A DNA stretch of 32,807 bases from Macrostomum lignano (Eukaryota), in NCBI GenBank assembly GCA_002269645.1, contig NIVC01004869.1:1-32807 (forward strand), given 5' to 3'. The notes under the pieces are model-generated. The model made no database searches. It was not told the DNA's origin and was given only the letters and a program-made list of their open reading frames with translations. The translations under genes and the position numbers were made by a program. Shown piece after piece: positions 2,971-31,260 of this stretch. Numbering within the stretch: the stretch's first letter is position 1; every line of letters begins with the position of its first letter.

Positions 2971-4890
2971 GTCAGGAAAGGAGGAGACGCTGAAGTTAGT
3001 GTCAGGAAAGGAGGAGACGCTGAAGTTAGTGTCAGGAAAGGAGGAGACGCTGAAGTTAGTGTCAGGAAAGGAGGAGACGCTGAAGTTAGTGTCAGGAAAG
3101 GAGGAGACGCTGAAGTTAGTGTCAGGAAAGGAGGAGACGCTGAAGTTAGTGTCAGGTAGAGGCGCTGAAGTTAGTGTCAGGAAAGGAGGAGACGCTGAAG
3201 TTAGTGTCAGGTAGAGGCGCTGAAGTTAGTGTCAGGTAGAGGCGCTGAAGTTTGTGTCAGGTGGAGACGCTGAAGTTTGTGTCAGGTGGAGACGCTGAAG
3301 TTAGTGTCAGGTAGAGACGCTGAAGTTAGTGTCAGGTAGAGGCGCTGAAGTTTGTGTCAGGTAGAGGCGCTGAAGTTTGTGTCAGGTAGAGGCGCTGAAG
3401 TTTGTGTCAGGTAGAGGCGCTGAAGTTTGTGTCAGGTGGAGACGCTGAAGTTTGTGTCAGGTAGAGGCGCTGAAGTTAGTGTCAGGTAGAGGCGCTGAAG
3501 TTAGTGTCAGGTAGAGGCGCTGAAGTTTGTGTCAGGTAGAGACGCTGAAGTTAGTGTCAGGTAGAGGCGCTGAAGTTAGTGTCAGGTAGAGACGCTGAAG
3601 TTAGTGTCAGGTAGAGGCGCTGAAGTTTGTGTCAGGTAGAGGCGCTGAAGTTTGTGTCAGGTAGAGGCGCTGAAGTTTGTGTCAGGTGGAGACGCTGAAG
3701 TTAGTGTCAGGTAGAGGCGCTGAAGTTAGTGTCAGGTAGAGACGCTGAAGTTAGTGTCAGGTAGAGACGCTGAAGTTAGTGTCAGGTAGAGACGCTGAAG
3801 TTAGTGTCAGGTAGAGGCGCTGAAGTTTGTGTCAGGTGGAGACGCTGAAGTTTGTGTCAGGTGGAGACGCTGAAGTTTGTGTCAGGTGGAGACGCTGAAG
3901 TTAGTGTCAGGTAGAGACGCTGAAGTTTGTGTCAGGTAGAGACGCTGAAGTTAGTGTCAGGTAGAGACGCTGAAGTTAGTGTCAGGTAGAGGCGCTGAAG
4001 TTTGTGTCAGGTAGAGGCGCTGAAGTTTGTGTCAGGTTGAGGCGCTGAAGTTTGTGTCAGGTGGAGACGCTGAAGTTTGTGTCAGGTAGAGGCGCTGAAG
4101 TTAGTGTCAGGTAGAGGCGCTGAAGTTAGTGTCAGGTAGAGGCGCTGAAGTTAGTGTCAGGTAGAGACGCTGAAGTTAGTGTCAGGTAGAGGCGCTGAAG
4201 TTAGTGTCAGGTAGAGGCGCTGAAGTTAGTGTCAGGTAGAGACGCTGAATATAGTGTCAGGTAGAGGCGCTGAAGTTTGTGTCAGGTAGAGGCGCTGAAG
4301 TTAGTGTCAGGTAGAGGCGCTGAAGTTTGTGTCAGGTAGAGGCGCTGAAGTTAGTGTCAGGTAGAGGCGCTGAAGTTAGTGTCAGGTAGAGGCGCTGAAG
4401 TTTGTGTCAGGTAGAGGCGCTGAAGTTAGTGTCAGGTAGAGGCGCTGAAGTTTGTGTCAGGTAGAGGCGCTGAAGTTTGTGTCAGGTGGAGACGCTGAAG
4501 TTAGTGTCAGGTAGAGGCGCAGAAGTTAGTGTCAGGTAGAGGCGCTGAAGTTTGTGTCAGGTAGAGGCGCTGAAGTTAGTGTCAGGTAGAGGCGCTGAAG
4601 TTTGTGTCAGGTAGAGGCGCTGAAGTTTGTGTCAGGTGGAGACGCTGAAGTTAGTGTCAGGTAGAGGCGCTGAAGTTAGTGTCAGGTAGAGACGCTGAAG
4701 TTAGTGTCAGGTAGAGACGCTGAAGTTAGTGTCAGGTAGAGACGCTGAAGTTAGTGTCAGGTAGAGGCGCTGAAGTTTGTGTCAGGTGGAGACGCTGAAG
4801 TTAGTGTCAGGTAGAGGCGCTGGAGTTAGTGTCAGGTGGAGACGCTGAAGTTAGTGTCAAGTAGAGGCGCTGGAGTTAGTGTCAGGAAAG
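2971..4890 (+). repeat. 30 bp / 25 bp satellite array
   Basis: Six 30-mers GTCAGGAAAGGAGGAGACGCTGAAGTTAGT (2971-3150), one 25-mer, one 30-mer, then about 67 25-mers GTCAGGT(A/G)GAG(G/A)CGCTGAAGTT(A/T)GT. The array ends in GTCAGGAAAG. Confidence 0.97.
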
Positions 4891-9420: not shown

Positions 9421-10250
9421 AATTTCCGCGTGATATTTTATGTATACACGTGTGTATAGCCTAATCCGAGTTCCAAGATGAGATAAGTGGTAAAAGAGGC
9501 CCAGATGTTGATATCAACTGAACCGAGGCATATGTTCCGAGGCAAATGTTTTAAAACAAATTTTGCGTCATCTTATAAAACAAAACTTTATTTTCTTTTA
9601 AGCTTTAATACTTTATGAAAAATTTAAGACAGAAAAATAAATTCCTTATTAATAAAAAATTAAGTAATAATAAGTTTCGCGAATTCAGGTTCGCCAGACC
9701 ATAGCGAAAACCATGCAAAACGAATGCTTCTAAGGCTATACCGAACATGTAGGCCTTGTAAAGCACTGATATATTATTATATCTGACCACTCGCTTATGG
9801 TAGGTAGGCCCCTAGCTTATGGTATTTTGGAACTGCTTAGCACATGCCATGCTGTAGCATGTGGTATGTGAATTATATTCTAATATAATTCACATATGAT
9901 TATATGAACTAATATATAGCCAATGTGAATTCTGTGGTTTAGTAAGGTCACAATTAGGTAGATAGTTAATAGCTTAAAATACATGGCAAATTACTTTAAT
10001 TTGGCCTACAAGGCCTACATTAGTATATATACAGGCCCTATCCTATAGGCCTATCTCTATCATTGGCCTAGATGGAAGTAATAGTCCTGCCATACTATTT
10101 CAGTTTTTTATACTTCAAGTAATTTAGCCTACTATGAATTTTTTGTATCTTTATTTGCCTTTCTCTCCTTGTCTTATATAGCAACTTTAAATTATATAAA
10201 TCTAGGTTAGCAAGTCAGAGCTAAGCTTTCTATATGACTATAGGCCTAAT

Positions 10251-21995: not shown

Positions 21996-22928
21996 ATGTC
22001 AAATCGATTTGCAAATAAATGTATCGAAGCGTCTGTCAGAAGATTGTTCACAATAATTTACACTAAAAAACAATTTCAGAATTCGATTTCAAAATCGACT
22101 CGCTCTAGTCGAAGCCGATCGACTTTACGCAACAGCCATGGATTTGTCAGCTTAATTGATTCCGATTCAGATGACGAAGTAGATCCTTCGACACTTGAGC
22201 CGCAGCAAAGAATTGTCACGGTGCGTCCGAAGGCAGAAATTATTGATTTAACAGCAGCAACTGCAGTGCCAGAAGGTTCAGACGATTGCATTGTTATTAG
22301 TGACAATGAAAGCGACAATGACCTTGCCAATAATGCTGATGATGGTGAGGAAGCTGCTAGGAGAACAGCAGATTCCCTAGTTTGGATCGATCTGGACGCT
22401 AACGAACTTGAAAGCGACACAGATGACGATGACGACCTCATTGTAGTAGCGGCGACTCCGCCCGCGACTCGACAGATGAAACCGACATTGCCAGCCAAAC
22501 GGAAACTGCTGTATTGTCAGATTTGTAAATCGAACTTTTCGGATCCAATTCGAACTCATCAAGCATCGATTGCTCATCAGCTGGCTCTGATGCCTGATGA
22601 GGCAGCCGCTCCAGCCTCCGGTTCAGCAGCTGACAGAAAATTGTGCGTAGCCTCTGGTCCAGCTTATCGGATGATGCTTAAACAGGGCTGGACACCCGGC
22701 AGCGGACTGGGTCGACATGGCCAGGGCCGTTCTCAGCCCATAGCAACCGTTGTCAAGCGGGACCGACTCGGTCTGGGCATGGCCGCTCCGAAAAGGAAGA
22801 AAAAGCAGATTCCGCAAAGCAACAATAGTTCTGCCGCCGAGCCTGCAGGCTCCGGTTGCAAAGCTAATTTTGAGCGAGATTTTCGACGATATATGAACGA
22901 CCCAGATTCCACTGCCTGGTTCCAATAA
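21996..22928 (+). CDS. GPANK1: GPANK1-like G-patch protein (zinc-finger-like motif + G-patch + conserved C-terminal helix) without ankyrin repeats; acidic N-terminus
   Basis: 310-aa ORF. YCQICKSNFSDPIRTHQASIAHQL (CxxC...H...H), G-patch GPAYRMMLKQGWTPGSGLGRHGQGRSQPIATVVKRDRLGLG, and C-terminal FERDFRRYMN, all like GPANK1 as recalled (YCxxC..H..STAHL; GFKLLLRGGWEPGMGLG..GEGR..PI.TVLKRDQEGLG; WERDLRTYMN). The 5' end is uncertain (possible acceptor TTTCAG at about 22079). Confidence 0.85.
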   Translation: MSNRFANKCIEASVRRLFTIIYTKKQFQNSISKSTRSSRSRSTLRNSHGFVSLIDSDSDDEVDPSTLEPQQRIVTVRPKAEIIDLTAATAVPEGSDDCIVISDNESDNDLANNADDGEEAARRTADSLVWIDLDANELESDTDDDDDLIVVAATPPATRQMKPTLPAKRKLLYCQICKSNFSDPIRTHQASIAHQLALMPDEAAAPASGSAADRKLCVASGPAYRMMLKQGWTPGSGLGRHGQGRSQPIATVVKRDRLGLGMAAPKRKKKQIPQSNNSSAAEPAGSGCKANFERDFRRYMNDPDSTAWFQ

Positions 22929-23274
22929 TACAATGGTTCAACTACATTAGTCGTTCATTTTTTGCTTGTTATAATGTTATTGTATCTCAATTTTGTGCTA
23001 CAATCCTGTTACGATTGTTTATATGCTGGTTTAATATGTTTCAGTGTAACAAAAATATAAGACAAGAAAATCGTTTTTTATAATTATTAATCAGAATCTT
23101 TTATTAACTTTCTACACAATCTACTTGTTAGTAGTTTTGCATGGATTGTTTATTTAATTTTCTTACTAATCATTTTTCGATACATATCGGTATAGGCTTA
23201 TATTAACTTGTTTTAACAGTAGCGACAGTACAAGTAGGAAAGATTGGGAAACTTCTGTACGGGTCTTCCCGTTG

Positions 23275-24553
23275 CTATGACGACACTCCGCAATCTGCAA
23301 TAACCAGCAGTTTTGTGGGTCTTCCCGACGGGGTGCCCAGGTCTTCGGCTCGTTGCAGCACGTCCCAACCGGATGTTAGCTCGCCAAATACCACGTGACG
23401 ACCGTCCATCCACGGACAGGGGGCCAGCGTGATCAAAAACTGGGAGCTGTTCGTGTCGGGGCCTGAAAGTTGGGGCAGATCGATCGCTTTCGTTTCAGTG
23501 CTTCACGTCTCTTCTCACCCCTGTGTCTCCTATCTCGCTTCTGTGTCTCCCATCTCATCTCTTCCTTGTGTCTCTTATCTCATCACTTCCTTGTGTCTCT
23601 CATCTCATCTTTTCTCTGTGTCTCTTATCTCATCTCTTCCCTGTGTCTCCCATCTCATCTCTTCCCTGTGTCTCCTATCCTCTTCCCTGTGTCTCTTATC
23701 TCATCTCTTCCCTGTGTCTCTCATCTCATTTCTTCCCTGCGTCTCTCATCTAATCTCTTCCCTGTGTGTCTTATCTCATCTTCCCTGTGTCTTCTATCTA
23801 ATCTCTTCCCTGTGTCTCCTATCTCATATCTTCCCACTGTCTCCCATCTCATCTCTTCCCTGTGTCTCTTATCTCATCTTCACCCTGTCTCCCATCTTAT
23901 CTCTTCCCTGCGTCTCATCTTATCTCTTCCCTGCGTCTCTCATCTCATCTCTTCCCTGTGTCTCTCATCTCATCTCTTCCCTGTGTCTCTTATCTTGCCC
24001 CGTGTCTCCTATATTTTCTTACCCCCGTGTCTCCCATCTTATCTCACCCTGTGTCTCCCATCTCATCCCACCCCTATGTCTCGCATCTCACCTCACCTGT
24101 CTCCTCTCTTTTCAACCCCGTCTCCAATCTCATCTCACACCGGTGTCCTCATCTCTTTTCATCCCTGTGACTCCCCTGTCTCTCCCTCTCTTCTCACTCT
24201 TGTGTCTCCAATCTCATCCCACAATGCTCACCGGAGTTGGCCATGCTCAAAAGGCCTCTCCTATCGTGCCTGCCAGTGAGATCCTCATCGGGGAAATACC
24301 TGCCATAGATAGACCAGCCGCCAGTGCCGTTGCCAGACTGGAAGTCGCCAGCTTGTATAGCAAAGCCGGGTATGCACCGGTGGACCCGGCTGCCCCTGTA
24401 GCCCGAACAGCCGTTCTCGTGTCCAACGCAGAGGCTGGCAAAGTTCCGGCAAGTCAGGGGGACTTTCGTAGCGAATAGGCGGAATTCGAGTCGGCCGAGA
24501 GGCACTGAGTTGGCTTCGAGCCTCAGATAGCAGCTGGTTGTGCTGGACTGCAT
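23275..24553 (-). CDS. Single-domain cyclophilin-type peptidyl-prolyl isomerase, 169 aa; exons 24553-24232 and 23462-23275
   Basis: Exon 1 carries [68 protein letters not shown]. Phase-1 intron gtgagc...tttcag. Exon 2 is [62 protein letters not shown]. Confidence 0.95.
23505..24215. repeat. Degenerate approx. 25-bp CT-rich minisatellite in the cyclophilin intron
   Basis: Repeated ATCTCATCTCTTCCCTGTGTCTC(C/T)(C/T). Confidence 0.9.
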
Positions 24554-24705: not shown

Positions 24706-27115
24706 CAGCGTATTTAGCATGCCACAACACGTCTATTTAGCGCAACAACACAGTCTATTTAGCGCCACAACACAGTCTATTCAGCGCCACAACACAGTCT
24801 ATTTAGCGCAACAACACGTCTATTTAGCGCAACAACACAGTCTATTTAGCGCCACAACACAGTCTATTCAGCGCCACAACACAGTCTATTTAGCATGCCA
24901 CAACACAGTCTATTTAGCGCAACAACACAGTCTATTTAGCGCCACAACACAGTCTATTCAGCGCCACAACACAGTCTATTTAGCGCAACAACACGTCTAT
25001 TTAGCGCAACAACACAGTCTATTTAGCGCCACAACACGTCTATTTAGCGCAACAACACAGTCTATTTAGCGCCACAACACAGTCTATTCAGCGCCACAAC
25101 ACAGTCTATTTAGCGCAACAACACGTCTATTTAGCGCAACAACACAGTCTATTTAGCGCCACAACACGTCTATTTAGCGCAACAACACAGTCTATTTAGC
25201 GCCACAACACAGTCTATTTAGCATGCCACAACACAGTCTATTTAGCGCAACAACACAGTCTATTTAGCGCCACAACACGTCTATTTAGCGCAACAACACA
25301 GTCTATTTAGCGCCACAACACAGTCTATTTAGCGCCACAACACGTCTATTTAGCGCCACAACACGTCTATTTAGCGCCACAACACAGTCTATTTAGCGCC
25401 ACAACACAGTCTATTTAGCGCCACAACACGTCTATTTAGCGCCGCAACACGTCTATTTAGCGCAACAACACAGTCTATTTAGCGCCACAACACGTCTATT
25501 TAGCGCAACAACACAGTCTATTCAGCGCCACAACATAGTCTATTTAGCGCAACAACATAGTCTATTTAGCATGCCACAACACGTCTATTTAGCGCCACAA
25601 CACAGTCTATTTAGCGCCACAACACGTCTATTTAGCGCAACAACACAGTCTATTCAGCGCCACAACACAGTCTATTCAGCGCCACAACATAGTCTATTCA
25701 GCGCCACAACACAGTCTATTTAGCATGCCACAACACGTCTATTTAGCGCCACAACACAGTCTATTTAGCGCCACAACACAGTCTATTTAGCGCCACAACA
25801 CAGTCTATTTAGCGCCACAACACAGTCTATTTAGCGCCACAACACAGTCTATTCAGCGCAACAACACAGTCTATTCAGCGCCACAACATAGTCTATTCAG
25901 CGCCACAACACAGTCTATTCAGCGCCACAACACAGTCTATTCAGCGCCACAACATAGTCTATTTAGCGCAACAACACAGTCTATTTAGCGCCACAACACA
26001 GTCTATTCAGCGCCACAACACAGTCTATTTAGCGCAACAACACGTCTATTTAGCGCAACAACACGTCTATTTAGCGCAACAACACAGTCTATTTAGCGCC
26101 ACAACACAGTCTATTCAGCGCCACAACACAGTCTATTTAGCGCAACAACACAGTCTATTTAGCGCCACAACACAGTCTATTCAGCGCCACAACACGTCTA
26201 TTTAGCGCAACAACACAGTCTATTTAGCGCCACAACACAGTCTATTCAGCGCAACAACACAGTCTATTCAGCGCCACAACATAGTCTATTCAGCGCCACA
26301 ACACAGTCTATTCAGCGCCACAACACAGTCTATTCAGCGCCACAACATAGTCTATTTAGCGCAACAACACAGTCTATTTAGCGCCACAACACAGTCTATT
26401 CAGCGCCACAACACAGTCTATTTAGCGCAACAACACGTCTATTTAGCGCAACAACACGTCTATTTAGCGCAACAACACAGTCTATTTAGCGCCACAACAC
26501 AGTCTATTCAGCGCCACAACACAGTCTATTTAGCGCAACAACACAGTCTATTTAGCGCCACAACACAGTCTATTCAGCGCCACAACACGTCTATTTAGCG
26601 CAACAACACAGTCTATTTAGCGCCACAACACGTCTATTTAGCGCAACAACACAGTCTATTCAGCGCCACAACACGTCTATTTAGCGCAACAACACAGTCT
26701 ATTTAGCGCCACAACACAGTCTATTCAGCGCCACAACACAGTCTATTTAGCGCAACAACACAGTCTATTTAGCGCAACAACACAGTCTATTCAGCGCCAC
26801 AACATAGTCTATTTAGCGCAACAACACAGTCTATTTAGCGCCACAACACAGTCTATTCAGCGCCACAACACAGTCTATTTAGCGCAACAACACAGTCTAT
26901 TTAGCGCAACAACACAGTCTATTTAGCGCAACAACACAGTCTATTCAGCGCCACAACACAGTCTATTTAGCGCAACAACACAGTCTATTTAGCGCCACAA
27001 CACAGTCTATTTAGCGCCACAATACAGTCTATTCAGCGCCACAACACAGTCTATTTAGCGACTCAACACAGTCTATTCAGCATCTCAACACAGTCTATTC
27101 AGCGCCACAATACAC
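24706..27115 (+). repeat. 2.4-kb 21/22-bp satellite with higher-order structure
   Basis: About 110 copies of AGCGC(C/A)ACAACA(C/T)(A)GTCTATT(T/C). Degenerate edge units from about 24661. Confidence 0.97.
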
Positions 27116-28532: not shown

Positions 28533-30468
28533 ATGTCTTCAAACTACACAGTGAACTGTCTGTTGGACTCTGTAGCCAAAACCTGCGGCGAAGGTCCCTT
28601 CTGGGAGCCGGTCACCAAAACTCTGTACTTTGTTAGCATCGCTGATGGTGAGGTTCACGTGTGGAGTGAGCCGAATAATTACCACAGCACCATCCAGGTG
28701 AGCGGAGCAGAGACCAGCCCAGCGTAAATTGCCTGGCTCTGCGTCGTTGTGGCGGACGATGTCCCCGAAGGCCTTGCACCAGGGTGTCCATACAGCCCTT
28801 CCTGAGAATATCTATTTCTTATTTTCCAGGTGGGTGAACAGCCTGGCAATTTCGTCAGCTTTGTCATCCCGTGCCAGAGTGGCGGCTTCCTAGCCGGAAT
28901 TAACAAGAGCATCGTGCACTGCGACTGGCAGGCTGGAGAGCTGAAACGTCGAGTGCTGCACGAAGTAGATCCTCAGGAGCCTATTAGGTGACTATTAACA
29001 CTTAGTTTAACTCAGAAACGTAAAATGCACATTCTATGTCCATAAACCAATCAATAAGTGACGAAATCGTTAGCGAATATACGCTTACTATTTTAATCAA
29101 ATTAATGCTCCGATAACGTCATCACAGTGCAGAGTCAAAAACTTCAGTATTTGCTGACGAAACTTCCGCAGGTTCAACGACGCCAAATGCGACCCGGCCG
29201 GACGCCTCCTGGCCGGCACGATGAGCCTGGAAAAAGAGGCTGGCTTAGTGATGAAGCCCGGTGCTGGCAGCCTGTTCGGCCTTGACCTGGACGGCTCCAT
29301 CAAGACGCTGGACACAGGATTCTCCCTTAGTAACGGCTTGGGCTGGCATGGCAACACGTTCTACTTCACCGACTCAGTCGCTCGAGTCATCTACGCCTAC
29401 GACTGGGACGCTGAGGCGTTCAGCATCTCGAATCGGCGAGTTGCCATCGACTTCTCGAAGCTGCCCGAGCAGGAGAAGCTCGGCGTGCCGGACGGTCTGG
29501 CTGTGGACGCAGATGGGCGGCTGTGGGTGGCCTGCTTCTTCGGCTCGCGGGTTCTGTGCCTGGACCCGCAGAGTGGCCAGGTGGTCAGCCAGATCCCCAT
29601 GCCTGTGCCCAACGTGACCTCCTGTTGCTTTGGGTCGGACGGAGAGCTGTTTGTGACCACCGCCAACCACTGGGGTGTGCGCGAGGGAGAGCAACCGCCT
29701 CCGCAGGTGGGTTAATTCGTGTATTTGCGGCTTTTGCGTCCCTTCATGTGTGTTATATTCGACGTGTCTTTCTTGAGGTGTCTATCGAGGTGTGTCATTT
29801 TTTAGTTGTGTCTGTGTCTGTGGAGGAGTGTCTTTGTCGATGAGTCTCTTTGTCGAGGAGTGTCTTTGTCGAGAAGTGTCTTTGTCGAGGAGTGTCTTTG
29901 TCGAGGAGTGTCTTTGTCAAGGAGTGTCTATGGAGGTTTTTTTTGTCGAGGAGTGTCTTTGTGGAGGAGTGTCTATGTCACGGTCACGGTGTCTATCAAG
30001 GAGTGTCTTTGTCACGGTGTCTATCAAGGAGTGTCTTTGTCATGGTGTCTATCAAGGAGTATCTTTGTCGCAGTGTCCATCGAGGAATGTCTATATCGAG
30101 ATGTGTGTTTGCCAAGGCTTGTCTTGTCGAGGAATGTCTTTGTCGAGGTGGATCTGTGTCGAGGAGTGTCTTTGTTACGGTGTATCTTTATCTAGGCGTG
30201 TCTTTGTAGAGGAGTGCCATTCTCTAGGTGTGTCTTTGTGTGTAAAATTAGGATTTAAAGGTTGTCTTAAAGGATTAAAAGGGTTAAACGAAATAATCTG
30301 AAGACACTACTAACTGACAAGTTGAGTACTGGCTGGTCGCATGTCAAACGTGAAGCTCCGCCGTCCCATCCGCAGGCCGGCAGCGTCTTCCGCGTCACCG
30401 GACTGGACCGAATTCGCGGAACGCCCAGCGTGATGTACAAAGGCAGCCTGCCCCTCATCAGCGATTAA
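28533..30468 (+). CDS. RGN: Regucalcin / SMP-30 / gluconolactonase family, copy 1, 316 aa; exons 28533-28697, 28830-28987, 29172-29706, 30376-30468
   Basis: In-frame joins (phases 0, 2, 0) at canonical GT-AG sites. Motifs GEGPFW, RFNDAKCDPAGRLLAGTM, LSNGLGW, FYFTDS, VPDGLAVDADGRLWVA, PNVTSCCFG, LFVTTA, AGSVFRVTGL. The metal ligands equivalent to E18, N103, N154 and D204 are present. Confidence 0.96.
29765..30242 (+). repeat. Degenerate 16-bp minisatellite in regucalcin intron 3
   Basis: Repeated GAGGAGTGTCTTTGTC and variants. Confidence 0.9.
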
Positions 30469-30930: not shown

Positions 30931-31260
30931 GTTTATGTTAGGGTTTAGTTTAGATTAGGTTTTTATGTTCAGGTTAGGTTTTCCATTTAGGTTAGGTTTA
31001 GGTTGGGTTTAGGGTTTAGGTTTATGGTTTAGGTCAGGGTTTAGGGTTAGGGTTTAGGGTTTTGGTTAGAGTTTATAATTTAGGTTGTGGTTTAGGGTTA
31101 GGGTTTAGGGTTTTGGTTAGAGTTTATAATTTAGGTTGTGGTTTAGGGTTAGGGTTTAGGGTTTTGTTTAGAGTTTATAATTTAGGTTGTGGTTTAGGGT
31201 TCAGGTTAGGGTTTATGGTTTATGGTTTAGGTAAGTTAGGGTTTATGGTTTAGGTTTAGG
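30931..31260 (+). repeat. Interstitial telomere-like TTAGGG/TTTAGGG tract with a 51-bp higher-order unit
   Basis: GGTTTAGGGTTAGGGTTTAGGGTTTTGGTTAGAGTTTATAATTTAGGTTGT three times at 31038-31190, within degenerate TTAGG(G) repeats. Confidence 0.9.

Follow-up and report, generated by a model that had tools for sequence, protein, structure and literature searches.

A candidate SUMO-guided helicase adaptor in the flatworm Macrostomum lignano: an ankyrin-less GPANK1-family protein with an array of SIM-like motifs, most likely made from a trans-spliced mRNA

G-patch proteins govern the place and the time of action of multifunctional helicases such as DHX15, and GPANK1 is among the last uncharacterised members of this group. 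In a preprint (bioRxiv 10.64898/2026.06.30.735655), DHX15 is reported to associate with a network of 20 human G-patch cofactors, and human GPANK1 is described as a nucleoplasmic protein that recovers few RNAs and whose depletion shifts alternative splicing. Animal GPANK1 (BAT4) carries N-terminal FVPA/FYExL motifs, ankyrin repeats, a C2H2 zinc finger, a G-patch followed by a VTHF motif, and a C-terminal WERDxRxY helix. Two other described systems bear on the present case: RNF4/Slx5-Slx8, in which a disordered N-terminal array of closely spaced motifs that interact with the small ubiquitin-like modifier (SUMO-interacting motifs, SIMs) is coupled to a RING effector and, according to PMC3901395, reads multiple or poly-SUMO by avidity; and the Siz/PIAS SP-RING ligases. 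Here we describe a GPANK1-family gene at 21996-22928 on the plus strand of a contig of Macrostomum lignano (NIVC01004869.1, assembly GCA_002269645.1). The whole contig, 32,807 nucleotides of eukaryotic sequence, served as the window of the analysis. The original prediction for this gene, made from the letters alone, was of an ankyrin-less GPANK1-like protein with five SIMs where the ankyrin repeats should be, that is, an RNA-helicase adaptor of an architecture that it did not know from described proteins and took for the best candidate for a new system in the window.

The flatworm protein agrees with animal GPANK1 in the order and spacing of its C2H2 finger, G-patch and C-terminal helix; it lacks the ankyrin repeats and the VTHF motif, its N-terminal FVPA/FYExL motifs are not clearly present, and an acidic arm with SIM-like motifs stands at the ankyrin position. 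This arm is like the N-terminal array of RNF4/Slx5-Slx8, but the effector is a G-patch and not a RING (Pfam detected no RING domain in the ORF), so that the protein is not a member of the SUMO-targeted ubiquitin ligase family. Unlike Siz/PIAS, it has no SP-RING, and its link to these ligases runs only through distant haptophyte relatives in which a Siz/PIAS-like domain precedes the same zinc finger/G-patch core. Its likeness to NKRF, SUGP1, TFIP11/Ntr1, PINX1 and RBM5/10 is confined to the G-patch, an intact domain that resembles those whose structures were solved on DHX15. RBM5/10 also have a C2H2 finger ahead of the G-patch; assignment to an RBM5/10-type zinc finger and G-patch family was rejected, as the similarity to RBM5 is limited to the G-patch (E=0.039). 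In the literature searched, we found no description of a SIM array in other G-patch helicase cofactors.

The identity of the core was established from several lines of evidence. The features given below all lie on the plus strand, and positions marked aa (amino acids) are numbered on the 310-aa open reading frame (ORF) 21996-22928, as in the original prediction; this frame is open in the present copy of the gene, and every motif that had been listed in it was recovered at its place, with the zinc-finger-like motif, the G-patch and the KRKKK patch in the order described. The zinc finger (22515..22577, aa 174-194) is a U1/matrin/JAZ-like C2H2 finger with the spacing C-x2-C-x10-H-x5-H, for which Pfam gave a weak CIZ1-like match (zf-C2H2_14, aa 173-196) while relatives match zf-met and zf-C2H2_jaz; its ligands C146, C149, H160 and H166 are at least 90% conserved over 150 family representatives, and AlphaFold2 placed it in a beta-beta-alpha fold with a predicted local distance difference test (pLDDT) score of 96. 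The G-patch (22653..22781, aa 220-262) matches Pfam PF01585 from position 2 to position 44 of the 45 in the profile (E=1e-15; score 57.6 bits, cut-off 22), is modelled with a pLDDT of about 80, and has as sequence matches in the PDB the DHX15-bound G-patches of SUGP1 (8ejm_B, 4e-5) and NKRF (6sh6_B, 4e-4). It is followed by the basic patch KRKKK (22791..22805, aa 266; KKQKK in the copies g1 and g2 introduced below), a possible nuclear localisation signal, and by the C-terminal helix GCKANFERDFRRYMN (22854..22898; residues 259-273 in the AlphaFold2 model, pLDDT about 80), which by hhalign is the counterpart of the GPANK1 WERDxRxY tail, FERDFRRYMN being aligned with WERDxRxYFN. When the Macrostomum copies were compared by hhalign with 14 ankyrin-type GPANK1 proteins, the alignment reached 99.7% probability (E=9e-26) over 138 columns running from the zinc finger through the G-patch to this terminal helix, and residues 1-132 had no alignment. 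The acidic arm thus aligns to no part of ankyrin-type GPANK1, and GFVSL alone resembles the FVPA motif. Given the hhalign result, the zinc ligands, the G-patch and the helix, the protein belongs by its core to the GPANK1 family, in which the C2H2 finger stands about 40-60 aa ahead of the G-patch, as it does here. The (K/R)VTHF motif after the G-patch is absent from the flatworm protein, with PKRKKKQIPQSNN standing in its place.

Searched exhaustively with HMMER, 1.84 billion representatives yielded 641 matches at E<1e-3. The best 150 of these all contain a G-patch; Pfam finds ankyrin (Ank_2) in 87 of them, and a hidden Markov model (HMM) specific to the ankyrin region of the family finds it in 93. 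The best of the named matches are from fish, bird and mollusc (Patella), and those that were looked up bear the name G patch domain and ankyrin repeat-containing protein 1. Homologue searches by word index, whether they started from the full ORF or from an 11-sequence alignment, returned almost nothing except paralogues, and when the AlphaFold2 model was compared with the PDB by Foldseek, no entry matched at E<1, small zinc fingers (Dbf4, JAZ, U1C-like) being at the top. Four of the better HMMER matches (P0004, P0011, P0140, P0146) have two or three tandem G-patches, an unrelated multi-G-patch architecture.

Ankyrin repeats were sought in four ways, all with a negative result: Pfam had no ankyrin match in the ORF; the family HMM, run against the six-frame translation of the whole contig, reached E=1.2 at best; tblastn of the 150 family proteins against the contig matched only within 22200-22800 and showed no ankyrin; and AlphaFold2 predicted no ankyrin fold, residues 1 to about 130 being disordered. 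The ankyrin form occurs in a mollusc as well as in vertebrates, so that the absence is most simply secondary, and the repeats were most likely lost in the flatworm. The domain swap that had been proposed, with a SIM-like arm in the place of ankyrin, is an inference. We are highly confident of both the gene model, which is treated below, and the ankyrin-less GPANK1-family identity.

The acidic N-terminal arm (22080..22514) comprises 145 aa with 31 D+E, 15 K+R and 28 S+T, and is predicted to be disordered, with a pLDDT that stays below 50 for almost every residue between 10 and 106 and does not exceed 70 until about residue 130. In its current definition (PMC12751080), a SIM is a four-residue core in which at least three positions are V, L or I (Cys also favoured), bordered by acidic or phosphorylatable residues and able to bind in either orientation; five segments of the arm, within the region predicted to be disordered, fit this definition. 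The first, VSLIDSDSDDE (22146..22178, aa 51), has a V-x-L-I core with a Ser/acidic tail; the core is identical in all copies of the gene and the flank shows D/A variation. The second, IIDLT (22239..22253, aa 82), has a core of the PIAS/RNF4 type in a weakly acidic setting, with one flanking acidic residue only. The third, CIVISDNESD (22287..22316; IVISDNESD at aa 99, 22290), has a C/I/V/I core and a Ser/acidic tail, the character of which is retained in spite of an N/S variant among the copies. The fourth is (L)VWIDLD (22380..22397, aa 129), and the fifth, DDDDDLIVV (22422..22448; string at aa 143, LIVV core at aa 148), is of the reversed kind, with the acidic stretch ahead of the core. The cores are spaced 17-31 aa apart. 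A sixth core, RIVTV, is flanked by basic residues and is not SIM-like. In composition-matched shuffles of the 145-aa arm 2.1 V/I/L cores were expected, against the 6 observed (p=7.5e-4); 19 of the 30 V/I/L residues lie inside cores (p=0.002), and 4 cores are acid-flanked, against 1.18 expected (p=0.011). The array of four or five SIM-like motifs, as it had been read from the letters, is real and non-random.

What such an array does is a separate matter. The protein could be a GPANK1 orthologue in reduced form, its arm a generic stretch of acidic and disordered sequence whose patches do not bind SUMO but act as a non-specific acidic tail, as a CK2 substrate, or as a docking site for histones, ribosomal proteins or importins; it would then be an ordinary G-patch helicase cofactor. 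The arm being disordered throughout by prediction suits such a role, and WIDL in the fourth motif also fits the WxxL core of LC3-interacting motifs. The non-random clustering of the hydrophobic residues argues against it, as do several motifs that fit the pattern of a V/I/L core with a Ser/acidic tail and resemble validated SIMs of PIAS, RNF4, PML and Daxx. Further evidence came from the relatives of the protein.

SIM-like arrays before the same zinc finger were found in ankyrin-less proteins of five chytrid genera (Spizellomyces, Gaertneriomyces, Rhizophlyctis, Powellomyces and Phlyctochytrium), with CIDLT twice in Spizellomyces and VIDLT, IDLT and DDDVIIIEPDSE in Gaertneriomyces. They are present as well in an ankyrin-less protein of the Tara Oceans marine metagenome, with at least six DDAVEV-type repeats (6-8 depending on the strictness of the count), and in one ankyrin-less protein from an NCBI assembly. 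These chytrid 'GPANK1' proteins (Spizellomyces SPPG_05469 and others) and the Tara Oceans and NCBI-assembly proteins share with the flatworm protein the order of acid-flanked V/I/L cores (for example VIDLT, CIDLT and VIVLDSDDE), zinc finger and G-patch; they differ from it in having only 22-31% identity with it, and are likewise uncharacterised. The chytrid proteins, unlike that of the flatworm, have kept the N-terminal PxxFV and IYR motifs, and most of them VTH (two are without it). In a joint alignment, most of the ankyrin-less relatives show xV[IV]V[IL]D[SG]D[DE]E at 30-60 aa before the finger, and LVWIDLD of the flatworm falls at that position. Of the ankyrin-less representatives, 8 out of 17 have at least two strict SIM-like motifs, as do 6 out of 87 of the ankyrin type (odds ratio 12, p=1.7e-4, Fisher); since ankyrin-type proteins are for the most part folded at the N-terminal end, the comparison is confounded to some extent. 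NCBI and UniProt call two of the Rhizophlyctis rosea proteins (P0066 and P0115) G patch domain and ankyrin repeat-containing protein 1; the family-specific HMM shows no ankyrin region in them, and the automatic name is misleading.

The recurrence of SIM-like arrays beside the same core in chytrids and other eukaryotes speaks against a generic arm. It also bears on how new the architecture is. No published description of a SIM array joined to a GPANK1 core was found in the literature searched, in keeping with the remark that it was unknown from described proteins; the combination is nevertheless present in database proteins, and the flatworm protein is neither a new kind of system nor unique to M. 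lignano.

A further connection to SUMO was seen in haptophytes. The Pavlova gyrans representative (P0045) has a sub-threshold Pfam zf-MIZ/zf-Nse match at its N-terminus. A regular-expression search for SP-RING among the 150 representatives gave no match. A search with P0045 returned six homologues with 33-45% identity over the aligned parts, including proteins of Pavlova sp. CCMP459 and of environmental genomic contigs. Five of these seven proteins have the N-terminal Cys/His domain in common, with zf-MIZ E-values of 5e-7 to 4e-4 that correspond to scores below the curated Pfam cut-off in every case; after it follow RFVPA and ADxYAAL motifs, the finger, the G-patch and LRVTH. When a profile of this domain was compared with PDB sequences, the best matches were Siz2 (4.6e-8), PIAS2 (1.4e-7), PIAS3 (3.4e-7) and Siz1 (1.1e-6), as against 2e-4 or worse for ubiquitin RINGs. 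In the haptophyte and environmental proteins P0045, P0165, P0166, P0167 and P0169 the sequence S/D-x-E-L-[VI]-[VI]-D stands right after the SP-RING-like domain; this is an acid-flanked hydrophobic core at the position of the PIAS SIM. That one lineage joins the core to a SUMO-ligase-type domain, and others join it to SIM arrays, amounts to domain-fusion evidence of a SUMO-pathway link; it suggests, by way of distant relatives, that the GPANK1 core may work with the SUMO pathway, and is a further point against a generic arm.

On this basis, the following mechanism can be proposed. The G-patch would bind and stimulate a DEAH-box helicase (a DHX15/Prp43 orthologue), the zinc finger would contact RNA or a protein partner, and the multivalent SIM arm, at the position held by the ankyrin module in animal GPANK1, would dock the complex by avidity onto SUMO-modified or poly-SUMOylated nuclear assemblies, possibly more strongly when its Ser/Asp tails carry CK2-type phosphorylation. 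The flatworm protein would thus be a SUMO-guided helicase adaptor that directs the helicase to SUMOylated nuclear assemblies. The idea is plausible, with family-level support from the SIM arrays of the relatives and the SP-RING-like fusions.

Apart from the confounded comparison and the sub-threshold zf-MIZ scores given above, several observations weigh against this proposal, most of which would equally suit a generic acidic arm. The SIM is explicitly a loose motif (PMC12751080), and the stricter count of acid-flanked cores is modestly significant (the p of 0.011 given above). A 2026 review (PMC13111387) lists GPANK1 as uncharacterised and, even for the human protein, its helicase partner as unknown, and in the literature searched we found no paper that links GPANK1 or G-patch/DHX15 proteins with SIMs. 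The homologue searches gave no orthologue of intermediate divergence, so that the cores could be compared only among paralogues that are 97-100% identical, and the substitutions between these paralogues, 10 non-synonymous to 4 synonymous, are near neutral. The acidic disordered regions of nuclear proteins, moreover, frequently hold hydrophobic-acidic patches. Taking both sides together, we regard it as evenly balanced whether the predicted SIMs truly bind SUMO, and the full mechanism of a SUMO-guided adaptor, which is built from sequence comparison, as a tentative proposal that falls somewhat short of that. A spliced leader (SL) trans-spliced, ankyrin-less member of the GPANK1 family that may act as a SUMO-guided helicase adaptor is, for the locus as a whole, the best explanation we can offer, and one held with a little less than even confidence; the reduced orthologue with a generic arm is a real possibility, if a rather doubtful one.

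A wider reading was also considered, in which the GPANK1-type core would be an ancient SUMO-pathway effector that brings a DEAH-box helicase to SUMO-modified ribonucleoproteins or chromatin. The attachment to SUMO would be lineage-specific, through SIM arrays in chytrids and some other eukaryotes, again and independently in Macrostomum after the loss of ankyrin, and through the SP-RING-like domain in haptophytes, and the ankyrin form seen in animals would have come later, as a replacement. We consider this reading unlikely. If it were true, it would provide a first functional handle on human GPANK1. A SUMO-reading arm as a targeting module would, if true, represent a new mode of RNA helicase recruitment, by way of the SUMO modification of the target complex; the SUMO-ligase-type domain of relatives points the same way, and together they suggest for the whole family a concrete, testable function. 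If SUMO binding fails, the finding reduces to the lineage-specific loss of an ankyrin domain in a flatworm gene.

The gene model on which the arm depends differs in its start from the 310-aa frame of the original prediction, which began at the ATG at 21996. The gene, Mlig032911, exists in five near-identical copies in M. lignano, namely this contig and g1-g4, with 97-100% protein identity (the protein closest to the ORF is BOX15_Mlig032911g2, at 98%). The annotated product of this contig has 282 aa (P0153), and this product and that of g2 (P0001) begin with NSISK, that is, at nucleotide 22080, just after ACAATTTCAG. The M. lignano SL is CGGTCTCTTACTGCGAAGACTCAATTTATTGCATG, with the 3' end ...TTGCATG, and the top trans-splice acceptor motif of the species is [T/C]TNCAG (PMC8629364). 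At the junction TTTCAG|AATTCG the acceptor motif is matched by TTTCAG (22074..22079), and the terminal ATG of the SL, which would come to stand directly before AAT at 22080, is in frame with AAT TCG and gives M-N-S-I-S. The coding sequence is accordingly a single exon of 282 codons and a stop (22080..22928). Trans-splicing most likely joins the leader to the mRNA at 22079|22080, and translation from the SL AUG would give a protein of 283 aa. The first 28 codons of the longer frame (21996..22079) are most likely outron, 5' sequence that is removed, and probably non-coding, because the annotated protein begins at 22080, right after the acceptor; the acidic region, first estimated at about 170 aa, shrinks for this reason to about 145 aa.

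The copies offer an indirect view of the same event. The four nucleotides before AATTCG (22076-22079 here, 9997-10000 at the g2 locus L001) read TCAG in this copy, TCTG in g4, TATG in g3 and CATG in g1 and g2; all of the differences go toward the SL bases CATG and are contiguous outward from the junction, in copies that are otherwise 97-99% identical. The M. lignano assembly was polished by Pilon with RNA-seq reads mapped by STAR (PMC5730564), and since polishing used such reads, the graded conversion of TCAG to CATG is best understood as the footprint of reads containing the leader; this is indirect evidence of trans-splicing exactly at 22079|22080. The alternative that the junction ATG of g1-g3 is a genuine genomic start that was lost here was rejected, given that the changes are contiguous toward the SL and that RNA-seq reads were used in polishing; the protein would be identical in either case. 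If real, the polishing artefact could flag positions of trans-splicing across the whole of Mlig_3_7 and could also have corrupted acceptor sites there.

Two other starts were weighed against that at the SL AUG. In the first, translation would begin at the genomic ATG at 21996, from an unspliced transcript or one with more upstream exons. The frame is open from there in this copy, but a 1-nucleotide indel near 22042 breaks it in g1, g2 and g4, the annotation begins at 22080, and the upstream sequence is AT-rich, with a GC content of about 32% as compared with 47% in the coding stretch (flanks, 30-32%). The acceptor and the SL footprints at the junction also stand against it, as does the fact that the rest of the contig holds no coding sequence related to the family. 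We regard this start as barely credible, and the probable trans-splicing at 22080 makes exons upstream that would add ankyrin repeats, a scenario that had been named as one that would overturn the ankyrin-less reading, very unlikely. In the second, the SL AUG would be skipped and the arm left untranslated, and the first internal ATG, at 22476, would yield a zinc finger and G-patch protein of about 150 aa. This copy has no genomic ATG between the acceptor and 22476, and the annotated proteins are flagged partial in all copies but g4, both of which suit an internal start. However, the 132 codons from 22080 to 22476 contain no stop (p=4e-4 by shuffling), whereas the other two frames have 6 and 18 over the same stretch, and codon position 1 is G-rich in it. 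The DNA of the acidic arm is as conserved among the copies as the domain part, with indels confined to g4, and the SL AUG is exactly in frame, the SL AUG of flatworms being documented as an initiator (Cheng et al., JBC 2006, pmid 16230357, as cited in PMC5832876). An internal start is therefore highly improbable, if slightly less so than the one at 21996, and the 283-aa protein read from the SL AUG is the model we retain.

The copies themselves raise the question of whether the gene is maintained. The flanks are collinear with those of the g2 locus at 96-98% identity, and such collinear, near-identical copies are consistent with the hidden polyploidy of M. lignano, as reported in PMC10468722. 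They might then be decaying, drifting duplicates of a recent polyploidisation in which the motifs have no function. The near-neutral substitution ratio given above speaks for decay, and two copies are damaged: g4 (L004) has three 1-nucleotide deletions, at the equivalents of 22271, 22509 and 22795, and an annotated product of 101 aa with a frameshifted tail (P0003), and in g2 (L001) the last codon, CAA (Gln) at the equivalent of 22923, has become TAA, which shortens the protein by one residue. On the other hand, the full frame is kept in four of the five copies, the polishing footprints imply expression, and the deletions of g4, the only indels in the coding region, are either those of a pseudogene or PacBio indel errors in the assembly. 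The differences between the copies spare the zinc ligands, the G-patch glycines and the SIM cores, although for the cores this carries little weight at 97-100% identity. Substitutions across the five copies amount to 1.4-1.9 per 100 bp in the coding stretch and 4.1-4.3 in the flanks, about threefold lower in coding, a difference for which RNA-seq polishing may partly account. We consider functionless, drifting duplicates very unlikely.

Opposite the acidic arm runs an antisense ORF (22076-22498, minus strand) of 140 aa rich in Ser, Leu and Ala; it is most likely a by-product of the GAN-rich run of acidic codons and shows no coding evidence. Downstream, a cyclophilin-type peptidyl-prolyl isomerase gene with at least two exons lies on the minus strand at 23213-24553 (Pfam PF00160 at 24194-24550 and 23275-23433), and between its exons a 25-bp minisatellite (23508-24175) accounts for long plus-strand ORFs that are spurious. 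The plus-strand stretch 29221-29715 holds one exon of an SMP-30/gluconolactonase/LRE-like gene (SGL, PF08450), and the same gene comes after the G-patch gene at the paralogous loci L001-L003 as well. Large minisatellites occupy 24711-27114 (22 bp x 110), 2984-4886 (25 bp x 75), 1486-2427 (24 bp x 39) and 571-993 (30 bp x 14); the 24-bp array produces a 364-aa ORF (1431-2525) with a low-complexity 'Cornifin' Pfam match that is probably no real gene. Finally, a 51-bp tandem repeat with TTAGGG-like units at 31016-31260 represents interstitial telomere-like sequence.

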